The notes under the pieces were generated by a model. That model was not told the DNA's origin and ran no database searches. It saw only the letters and a list, made by a program, of their open reading frames with translations. A stretch of DNA of 63,345 nt, counting the filler, from Bigelowiella natans CCMP2755 (taxonomy: Eukaryota; Protista; Cercozoa), in NCBI GenBank assembly GCA_000320545.1. It is 7 parts of 7 records of this genome, joined end to end, with 100 filler letters (N's around TTAATTAATTAA, not from the genome) between each part and the next. Parts side by side here need not be neighbours in the genome. Positions count along the whole stretch, not along the records: positions 16,085 to 24,498 come from ADNK01001498.1; 6 more parts are not named here. One strand, written 5' to 3'. The position numbers were made by a program, and so were the translations under genes. Positions within the stretch are counted from its first letter, which is position 1; each line of letters starts with the position of its first letter. Below are positions 20,631-22,493 of this stretch, piece after piece.

Positions 20631-21483
20631 TTCATCTTGACTGCAGCCAAGTAGCAGTTGCAACGTGCGCATCATGCATGACAACTACGATGAAATGCAA
20701 CAAAATGATTGAAACATGGCGGTGCGACTGCGCAACTGGAGGCATCGTTGCTCTCCAAACGCTCTGCTCTGATCGAGCATTTGTGCGAATTGTCATTTCT
20801 TTGCAGTTCAACGTCGTTCCCGAGCCACAGCCCATGCTCATGCCAGCCAGCATGATGAAGGGTTCACATGTCAGGGCAGTCTAGCAGTGCATGCGATGCC
20901 CACGCACAGCATGTCGTGTGATGTGTGATGTTTTGCACACGCTGTTTGCGCTCAGTCCACGTGCACGCACTGCACGTTTGGAACACCTTGCGTGCATCCG
21001 ATTGCTGAATTGCAGGGCGCAACAGGCAATGAGCGCAGCAGCGACACACGCCATGGTTGCGCATGTGAAGCGATGTGCACAGCGCTCGAATTGTGCTCTG
21101 GCATTCTGTCGAGCTAGCGAGGTGGAGAACGTGTTGCTCGTGCTTGTGAGACCACCTCTCTGATTTTTTTGGTGTGCATTGCACCACGCACACGTGAACA
21201 AGGAATGCCACCCAAACGAACTCAAAGCACCTGGAAAGTTGAGCACGCTGGCAGCTCTGCTCTTGACTTGTTGCTCTGAACCCAAGAGTGATCCACGCAC
21301 AATGTGTCCCTTCCACCTCTGGTTCTGTGAGCAATGACCAGCGTTTGAACTTGAAACAGAAGAAGTGCGTGCCGAAAAACAACGGGGACTCACAGCTTGG
21401 ACAGCGACATCCGTTGTCGTTGTCTGAAAGTGCCCGGGAATCCCGGTGAAACGGTTCAAAACTTTTCTTTTGATTTCTCCTCA

Positions 21484-22460
21484 GCTTCCAGCCGGCGCGC
21501 CCAAGGCCGACGTGAACTCACCGTCCACTTGTCGGGACGCCTGCTCCCCTTCGTGATCGCAATGACGGGGCCTTGGGTGCCTGCTGCGTGGCTTCTTCGC
21601 AAAGAGCCTTCACACCAGGTCGCACCAAGAACTGTTCAATGCTGACCTTGTTTGAACAAAAATTCACCAATTCAAACGACTTCTTCCACTTCTCTTTCCC
21701 TTGACCTTTCGTTGCTGCCAACAACACAGCCAAGAGTGCCCATTGATCCGTGTTGGTGTTGCACAGTTGACCTCAGCAGCTTCTTGTGACAACTTTCGAG
21801 ACCACTCTTTGTCAGACAAAGCAACCAGTTTGTCGTGCGCTTGAGTGGCATGCGACGTGTTTCCTCTCATGCCTGTCTCCCATGTGGTTCTGGCGCATGC
21901 AGTTTTTGATCAACGCTTTGTTCATTGTTCATCATTGTTCATTCTCTCTTTGGCTGAGGTGAAACTTGAATCGATGAGTTTCTGGGCTGCCTCCGCCGAG
22001 TGCTCGTGACTGCCAAAGCCATCAACAGTCTTCACGACGGGAAACTCGGTGAAGAATTCGCACACACGATCGCACTTGCGAACGGAAGAAGGCAACTTTT
22101 CGCACGTCTTGTGCAACGTGAGACGGATGTGATGAAGAATCAAATTTTTTCAATGGTCATCCTGATGTAGCTGTGCAATGTGCAACGTGTCATCGTTCAC
22201 GAAGCCGTTTGGGGTCACGAACGTGGTGCTTCCAGCCGGCGCGCCCAAGGCCGACGTGAACTCATCCGTCCACTTGTCGGGACGCCTGCTCCCCTTCGTG
22301 ATCGCAATGACTGGGCCTTGGGTGCCTGCTGCGTCGCCGCAGCGATGAAGTGTGAGAGAGAGCCCAGAGTCTTCGCCAATCTTGTCACAATGAACAATGA
22401 ACAATGAACAAAGCGTTGATCAAAAACTGCATGCGCCAGAACCACATGGGAGACAGGCAT
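21484..22460 (-). pseudogene. Decayed, internally rearranged pogo/DDE_1-like transposase
   Basis: Minus-strand translation SLTLHRCGDAAGTQGPVIAITKG...GAPAGSTTFVTPNGFVNDDT continues after a short insertion as TLHKTCEKL...VKTVDGFGSH (DDE_1 motifs xxNG[W/F]M and DGxxSH); direct duplication 21484-21589/22228-22334; inverted duplication 21869-21931/22398-22460. Confidence 0.7.
22119..22180 (+). mobile_element. Solo TIR fragment of the MITE family, inserted in the transposase remnant
   Basis: Matches the TIRs at 40230-40310 and 58483/59262; flanked by a direct repeat tgtgcaacgtg (22110-22120, 22179-22189). Confidence 0.75.
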
Positions 22461-22493
22461 TTGCACGCAGCAGAGCCTCAACAACACTCGTTG

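Follow-up and report, generated by a model that had tools for sequence, protein, structure and literature searches.

A TpA-stripped island of transposon debris and single-copy DNA beside a young LTR retrotransposon in Bigelowiella natans

The locus and its composition

The window analysed here is a stretch of 63,345 nucleotides joined from seven parts of the Bigelowiella natans CCMP2755 genome (assembly GCA_000320545.1), and the locus of interest lies in the piece derived from ADNK01001498.1 (positions 16,085–24,498). Between the end of a host gene and the long terminal repeat (LTR) of a retrotransposon, this piece carries about 1.8 kb of DNA that is nearly devoid of the dinucleotide TpA. Counted over 20690–22493 (1804 nt; A 408, C 491, G 458, and T 447), three TpA were found against 101 expected, an observed/expected ratio (o/e) of 0.03. 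TG (187, o/e 1.65) and CA (166, o/e 1.49) are abundant, with a combined CA+TG o/e of 1.57, CpG is kept at a normal level (112, o/e 0.90), and the GC content is 52.6%. A preliminary description, made from the sequence alone, had given exactly this TpA count and had noted the abundance of TG and CA, the retention of CpG, and the confinement of all three remaining TpA to CTAG or GTAG; all of this was reproduced. The survivors are located at 20882 (TCTAGC), 21115 (GCTAGC), and 22168 (TGTAGC).

The longest TpA-free gap within the island is 1053 nt, and the closest TpA beyond it are at 20686 and 22496, so that the TA-poor run extends over 20687–22495. Given the background of 0.056 TpA per nt in the same piece, the Poisson probability of three or fewer TpA is about 3e-39, and the lowest count in 2000 mononucleotide shuffles was 74. 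The TA o/e of the flanks is normal, being 0.80 in the host DNA at 16300–20629, 1.22 in the LTR, and 1.11 in the LTR interior. The stretch is present in contigs of 14 sequencing runs labelled Bigelowiella natans, and contigs of independent runs from 2011, 2021, and 2025 match the single-copy part of the island with no differences, which shows that the island is not an assembly artefact. The following features were recognised:

20439–20630, plus strand: last coding stretch of a host gene, from translation, with the stop codon TGA at 20628–20630
20687–22495, no strand: TpA-stripped island, with the composition given above
20690–21343, no strand: single-copy, transcriptionally silent part of the island without recognisable coding content (contig depth, RNA depth, composition, and Pfam)
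21484–21599, minus strand: second short fragment of the transposase remnant, a direct repeat of 22228–22337 with two transversions and a 1-nt indel
21499–22389, minus strand: hypermutated, N-terminally truncated Tc1/mariner-pogo-like DDD transposase remnant (tblastn, phmmer, fold of a relative, and acidic triad)
21867–21945, no strand: 79-bp high-copy unit (a contig joint from 21866 to 21946 skips 79 nt; depth about 17,500)
22112–22184, no strand: 73-bp high-copy insert (its 73 nt are bridged by a contig joint between 22111 and 22185; contig depths add up to about 135,000)
22386–22474, no strand: inverted copy of the 79-bp unit (arms 21869–21932 and 22397–22460, 100% complementary)
22494–22820, plus strand: 5' LTR (TG...CA) of a young LTR retrotransposon with high transcription (contig joints, RNA ends, and poly(A))
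22859–24498, plus strand: gag(-pol) open reading frame (ORF) with 18 Tyr, cut short where the piece ends

The left edge of the island lies just after the host stop codon, as the preliminary description had stated. The RNA of the host transcript (first mate on the plus strand) has a depth of 3–5 at 20474–20647, 0.14 at 20648–20734, and zero beyond, so that the transcript tails off from about 20650 to 20734. The adjoining single-copy part, 20690–21343, has a contig depth at the single-copy level (86.8 in X1 and 69 in X14), an RNA depth of 0, and no paralogous contigs at a likeness of at least 80%. Of all parts of the island, conversion has gone furthest in this one, the o/e values being 0.06 for TA, 1.92 for TG, and 1.74 for CA. 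A Pfam search with eight ORFs of the piece returned nothing for the island ORFs, and the long ORFs in 20864–21459 are probably artefacts, since this sequence is nearly free of TAA and TAG stops.

The right edge coincides with the start of a young TpA-rich LTR at 22494, also in agreement with the preliminary description. The LTR boundaries are given by contig joints to 22494 and from 22819–22821, 4240 RNA reads carry ...GGGGGAG, a polypurine tract, before 22493, and a poly(A) site at 22741 is marked by 13,859 reads in which a poly(A) tail follows this position; the RNA depth of the LTR is about 19,000. The protein encoded by the gag ORF (22859–24496) is 100% identical to at least five jgi/Bigna1 gene models on different scaffolds, and therefore the piece is B. 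natans nuclear DNA. It carries a CCHC knuckle, CGYCSRKGKHTAKDC, along with a faint match to Pfam Retrotrans_gag (E 0.63). The element thus bears the marks of an LTR retrotransposon, namely, an LTR bounded by TG and CA, a polypurine tract, a poly(A) site, and a gag that includes a CCHC knuckle; its 3' LTR and the sequence past it fall outside the piece. The family, which has dozens of near-identical copies, is probably active in B. natans cultures.

Most of the rest of the island is occupied by the transposase remnant, which contains no tyrosine and is interrupted by two small inserts. The preliminary description had pointed to a tyrosine-free reading frame and had guessed that its LHRCG derives from LYRCG; the frame does belong to a transposase remnant, and its relative P0022 has LYRCG at this site. 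A tblastn search matched the window with P0015 (E 1e-50) and P0016 (E 3e-20). For an 84-aa ORF of the remnant, phmmer matched P0014 (an MMETSP transcript, 99%), P0015 (a 714-aa B. natans protein, 90%), and about 50 further, more distant protein relatives, mostly metagenomic. No Pfam DDE model was matched by the remnant or 17 of its relatives, one relative having HTH_psq (E 4e-4), and an ESM Atlas feature search with a 73-aa piece gave matches at chance level only. A sequence profile of the family run against PDB found no transposase, so a fold search was needed. In this search, the AlphaFold model of the intact relative P0016 (predicted local distance difference test score, pLDDT, 73), tested in place of the remnant, had Mos1, Sleeping Beauty, and SETMAR as its best Foldseek matches (E 1e-5 to 4e-3, prob 1.0). 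The acidic triad D126/D249/D286 is kept across the family alignment, with the spacing of about 35 residues between the second and third acidic residues that serves as the ITm criterion. The remnant retains the second (VDGFGSH) and third (AQAHD) triad motifs and lacks the first owing to its N-terminal truncation. On the basis of the fold matches of its relative and the family-wide acidic triad, the remnant is assigned to Tc1/mariner-pogo-like DDD transposases. The 64-nt inverted arms in this region belong to the separate 79-bp high-copy unit and are not the ends of the transposase element, for which no true termini (terminal inverted repeats with a TA target-site duplication) were found.

Two relatives of the remnant deserve separate mention. 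Compared with 21925–22407, P0014 is a TpA-stripped paralogue of the remnant without the 73-bp insert, and its presence in a transcriptome means that at least one dead transposase copy is transcribed. The metagenome contig ERZ27287254 k119_1371500 (L001:1-4054) encodes an intact transposase relative, about 50% identical to the remnant. TpA in this contig is depleted by half (o/e 0.50, with TG at 1.33 and CA at 1.20), which could be due to nothing more than ordinary coding bias or to the same process operating more mildly in another host.

Direction of the change

Comparison with related copies supports the view that the island arose by directional change of TA to TG or CA on both strands. Among the contig differences listed, most copies of the 79-bp family have TA at 21900–21901, where the window has CA (C>T at 21900 in most contigs), and most copies of the 73-bp family have TA at 22141–22142, where the window again has CA (C>T in 57 contigs and in 135 of 165 RNA reads). 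At 22428–22429, about half of the family copies listed have TA in place of the window's TG (A versus G at 22429). The preliminary description had named equally TpA-free consensus copies as an observation that would speak against a directional process; the consensus copies are not equally TpA-free, as among the differences listed the families mostly keep TA at 21900 and 22141. The low-copy paralogues of 21629–21830 and 21946–22111 show, among the listed differences, at least three adjacent double changes relative to the window, namely, CA/TG at 21731–2, TG/CA at 21754–5, and CA/TG at 22020–1, with about 0.2 such swaps expected by chance at this divergence. Such swaps would fit independent hits on the two strands of one ancestral TA.

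Protein comparisons point the same way. The Tyr of AQAYD in P0016 corresponds to His in the window and to Cys in P0015, and P0015 has no Tyr in 714 aa versus 1–3% Tyr in its relatives, an outcome with a chance probability of about 2e-6. P0013, a diverged copy of the window's gag, has no Tyr versus 18 in the window gag, and TA>TG/CA changes on the window codons account for 19 of its 29 amino-acid differences, including four Y>C, three Y>H, and three I>T. No record was found in a search for contigs encoding P0013 or P0015, and both were compared at the protein level. When the approximately 128 excess TG and CA are subtracted, the GC content of the island falls from 52.6% to about 45.5%, near the genome mean of 44.9%. 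The locus itself thus demonstrates both the direction of change and saturation, and the family majorities, the paralogue swaps, and the replacement of Tyr by His or Cys bear out the directional TA>TG/CA process on both strands proposed in the preliminary description.

Relation to published hypermutation, targeting, and chemistry

TpA hypermutation in B. natans has been reported by Mettrop et al. (bioRxiv 10.64898/2026.01.13.699255), the single paper of direct relevance that a full-text search turned up. Of the 302 new point mutations that arose in nuclear DNA in their mutation-accumulation experiment, 231 lay within two integrated viral regions, a 186-kb single-copy insert of a nucleocytoplasmic large DNA virus (NCLDV) and a virophage insert, where the mutation rate was about 1000 times the background. 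With a single exception, these 231 mutations were A>G or T>C, and all 230 are placed on TpA by the authors. Their data show that TpA sites are mutated de novo and in place in the DNA, the rate being about 1e-5 per TpA per generation where a region is targeted. The same preprint lists 324 TpA-depleted gene models, in which DDE-endonuclease and reverse-transcriptase domains are over-represented, and 124 clusters of TpA-depleted, CpA+TpG-enriched 1-kb windows, and names transposons as potential targets. As the agent, its authors propose the ADAT2-like adenine deaminase Bn78255, a homologue that carries a residue linked to DNA activity, acting in defence against foreign DNA, and they compare the system with repeat-induced point mutation (RIP). 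Within Table S2 of the preprint, four of the 119 scaffold 10 T>C rows are in ATG (three) or ATT (one), with no A after the T, contrary to its text.

We consider the island to be a finished product of the TA-specific hypermutation process described in this organism, with a probability of roughly 0.8. The organism is the same, as are the TpA>TpG/CpA change on both strands with CpA and TpG enrichment and the link to transposons. Moreover, P0013 corresponds to Bigna1 137108, which is listed in Table S6 of the preprint (bioRxiv 10.64898/2026.01.13.699255) with its neighbour 137107 beside it; neighbouring scaffold-37 models are also in the low-TpA lists, many entries of which follow one another as consecutive gene models along a single scaffold. 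The inserts studied by Mettrop et al. are partly depleted (Rho 0.45) or not depleted at all, whereas the island is saturated (0.03), and, in contrast to those targets, it consists of nested transposon debris and single-copy DNA bounded by the end of a host transcript and an untouched LTR. Its Rho values of 0.03 for TpA and 1.57 for CpA+TpG pass the preprint cut-offs (≤0.43 and ≥1.52, respectively). The cluster rule of the preprint asks for at least three consecutive 1-kb windows, and the island, ended by the LTR insertion, measures 1.8 kb in this piece; being shorter than three such windows, it is probably absent from the 124 clusters. The preliminary description had presented the phenomenon as undescribed, a claim that fails in view of the 2026 preprint, to which the discovery is credited; its reasoning amounts to a correct independent rediscovery. 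The phenomenon being already known, the locus adds anatomical detail only, as a clean, saturated example in transposon debris with sharp edges, the host transcript end on one side and the young LTR on the other.

A history of the locus can be proposed as follows. An old junk patch downstream of the host gene would have consisted of a pogo/mariner-like copy, nested high-copy inserts, and about 650 bp of single-copy DNA. During transcriptional silence, nearly all of its TpA would have been mutated on either strand, leaving CTAG and TAG, the slowest contexts. The GC content may thereby have risen from about 45% to 52.6%, with all Tyr codons and TAA and TAG stops lost and CpG spared. The young, transcribed LTR retrotransposon would have been inserted afterwards at 22494, and is still untouched.

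The locus also bears on how the process is targeted. The hypermutation could be triggered by sequence repetition as in fungal RIP, with homology recognised and both copies mutated, and most of 21344–22493 does consist of low- or high-copy repeats, just as the TpA-depleted gene models are enriched in transposon domains. We regard such a trigger as unlikely, and the repeat targeting assumed in the preliminary description is not supported, on the same evidence: the first approximately 650 bp of the island are single-copy at a likeness of at least 80% and yet saturated, and the many-copy LTR element next door is intact, with 128 TpA and none of about 94 sensitive codons changed in the window copy. 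The LTR family, untouched here, is saturated at another locus (P0013), and the 186-kb main target of the preprint is single-copy (bioRxiv 10.64898/2026.01.13.699255). That single-copy DNA is mutated and a many-copy active element spared thus argues against repeat-based targeting. From the figures in the preprint (210 hits, 6169 TpA, and 3132 generations), we calculated a rate of about 1.1e-5 per TpA per generation, which corresponds to about 3e5 generations for saturation to 3% and about 700 generations to the first hit on a targeted element with 128 TpA. The LTR copy is therefore either extremely recent or not targeted.

We infer that what decides targeting is whether a sequence lies in a silent domain, and not the family to which it belongs, its copy number, or its foreignness. 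As a tentative proposal, to which we give clearly less than even odds, the mutator would take its aim from chromatin domain or transcriptional silence, with neither repetition nor foreign origin directing it, and would be a nuclear enzyme that deaminates adenine in DNA, recognises T-A, and works about three times more slowly where a G follows on the 3' side. If this were true, LTR copies would be untouched (transcribed, as here) or saturated (as P0013) depending only on location, the junction of the island and the LTR would be a natural reporter of the boundary of the targeted state, and the system would be the first natural eukaryotic genome defence by DNA adenine deamination coupled to heterochromatin.

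The preference for the 3' neighbour was counted by hand and strand-normalised for the scaffold 10 rows of Table S2 (bioRxiv 10.64898/2026.01.13.699255), leaving out the four T>C rows without a following A. The base 3' of the mutated A (n = 206) was T in 67 cases, A in 67, C in 52, and G in 20, an approximately threefold deficit of G (P about 8e-7) versus 22.8% TAG among TAN in the window's normal DNA. Since CTAG has a 3' G on both strands, it should go last; of the three survivors in the island, two are CTAG and one has the TAG context on a single strand, which matches the disfavour of 3' G. In line 19 of Table S2, also by hand, 44 new mutations formed 19 strand runs versus 22.8 expected (z about -1.2); there is no evidence for long single-strand tracts in these runs.

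Several points weigh against parts of this interpretation. The spectrum of copies against their families is a sample, 40 of 95 contig differences being listed. A homologue search with P0015 returned only itself, no intact B. natans transposase copy was found, and the unmutated state of the transposase is taken from metagenomic relatives at about 50% identity. The locus has no visible de novo hit, the 2021 and 2025 contigs having no differences over 20300–21513; with three TpA, the island has no substrate left, which explains this. The background used for the 3' G comparison is normal DNA of the window, not the viral region. TpA is palindromic, so A>G is indistinguishable from T>C on the opposite strand. 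The virophage target is expressed and is not distinguished by its expression (bioRxiv 10.64898/2026.01.13.699255), which weakens the connection with silent chromatin; silence may not be required.

The chemistry is inferred to be the conversion of adenine in DNA to hypoxanthine through deamination, carried out by a TadA/ADAT2-like enzyme with T-A as its recognition context and a bias against 3' G. The self-complementarity of TpA makes all observations fit T>C equally, and the deaminase role is at the candidate level here, so that modification of T at TpA (e.g., JBP/TET-like hydroxylation to 5-hydroxymethyluracil) or faulty repair would serve as well. This thymine chemistry seems slightly less probable even than a repetition trigger: 5-hydroxymethyluracil pairs well with A and is weakly mutagenic, and TadA/ADAT enzymes naturally read U33-A34, which gives a ready account of the T-A context. 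An ADAT2 homologue with the residue linked to DNA activity has been found in B. natans as well (bioRxiv 10.64898/2026.01.13.699255). Another route would be ADAR-like A-to-I editing of repeat double-stranded RNA (dsRNA), fixed through reverse transcription and re-insertion or through gene conversion; the 5' U preference of ADAR and the transcription of a stripped paralogue (P0014, MMETSP) would suit it. This route is largely refuted and very improbable, since the island comprises a DNA transposon and single-copy non-coding DNA without RNA coverage, the two strands are about equally affected (TG 187 versus CA 166), the nested inserts and their surroundings are all converted in place, and fresh mutations appear in place in a single-copy region that is silent (bioRxiv 10.64898/2026.01.13.699255). 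The disfavour of 3' G (20 of 206) is likewise inconsistent with ADAR, which favours it. Hardly more credible is that the scarcity of TpA is intrinsic or selected (e.g., by avoidance of a TA-cutting nuclease or as a compositional quirk) and not a mutational end-state. The 100% complementarity of the 64-nt arms and the 109-nt direct repeat, whose copies differ by transversions only, lend this view something and imply that some duplication followed the loss of TpA. The directional comparisons already contradict it: at converted sites, TA or Tyr is present in the majority of family copies and in protein relatives, paralogues show TG and CA as alternatives at the same site, single-copy non-coding DNA is equally affected, and the GC excess equals the inferred number of conversions.

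Three further candidates were rejected. Ultraviolet TA photoproducts cannot yield 1000-fold locus specificity. Decay by 5-methylcytosine (5mC) deamination needs CpG depletion, and the CpG o/e is 0.90. Fungal RIP is ruled out by the TpA o/e of 0.03, the CpA o/e of 1.49, the GC content of 52.6% versus the genome mean of 44.9%, and the saturation of single-copy DNA. The exclusion of RIP and 5mC decay in the preliminary description is thus borne out, with TpA destroyed and CpG retained; RIP, 5mC decay, APOBEC, and ADAR acting through RNA each fail a defining feature.

Among known systems, RIP of Neurospora and other fungi is alike in being a hypermutation by transitions at particular dinucleotides, through which mobile DNA is irreversibly inactivated and islands of biased composition are left behind. 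It changes C to T mainly at CpA, makes TpA, lowers GC, and needs duplicated sequence, whereas in the B. natans island A:T is changed to G:C at TpA, TpA is destroyed, GC is raised, and single-copy DNA is affected. The AID/APOBEC and ADAR enzymes of animals resemble the B. natans process as deaminase editing with a neighbour preference directed against mobile or viral nucleic acid, but APOBEC targets C, and ADAR targets dsRNA and prefers 3' G. To our knowledge, neither APOBEC nor ADAR mutates resident chromosomal DNA in place over generations. TadA and ADAT2-ADAT3 deaminate the A after U33 in the anticodon loop, i.e., in a T-A context, and DNA activity has been reported for the ADAT2 of amphioxus and trypanosomes. 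The tRNA substrates of ADAT2/3 often have G35, and the disfavour of 3' G is not an obvious ADAT2/3 property; the likeness therefore extends to the T-A context, whereas a 3' G is often natural for these enzymes (position 35) and disfavoured in the B. natans spectrum, with Bn78255 a candidate only. A change of A:T to G:C only at TpA, in chosen nuclear stretches, is a mirror image of fungal RIP and suggests that a natural DNA adenine deaminase is at work; such an enzyme would be of interest both to genome-defence biology and to base-editing technology. The locus constrains targeting and site choice, the enzyme standing at the candidate level.

Nested repeats and neighbouring sequence

Neither of the two small high-copy elements nested in the transposase remnant is shared with its low-copy paralogue. 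The 73-bp insert is flanked on both sides by the 11-bp direct repeat TGTGCAACGTG, and the residual TpA at 22168 sits within it. It resembles a tiny miniature inverted-repeat transposable element (MITE) with a long target-site duplication, and in other copies the core of this family is directly joined to the LTR start. The inverted copy of the 79-bp unit gives rise to a 64-nt perfect inverted repeat. Both copies of this unit (21867–21945 and 22386–22474) contain (AACAATG)n, and contigs that go back 78 nt suggest tandem arrays of the unit elsewhere in the genome.

A search of the whole piece against Rfam gave no match. The last exon and 3' end of the host gene (20400–20689) are moderately TpA-poor, with 10 TpA (o/e 0.47) and a CA o/e of 1.77; this could be coding bias or a slight spill-over from the island, and the sites are few. 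Microsatellites were observed at the left edge of the piece, a long (TA)n followed by (GT)n, with more (GT)n and (TA)n tracts in the host region (16085–16224, 17496–17566, and 18375–18465), and a (TA)50 tract persists 4.5 kb away from the TpA-erased island.

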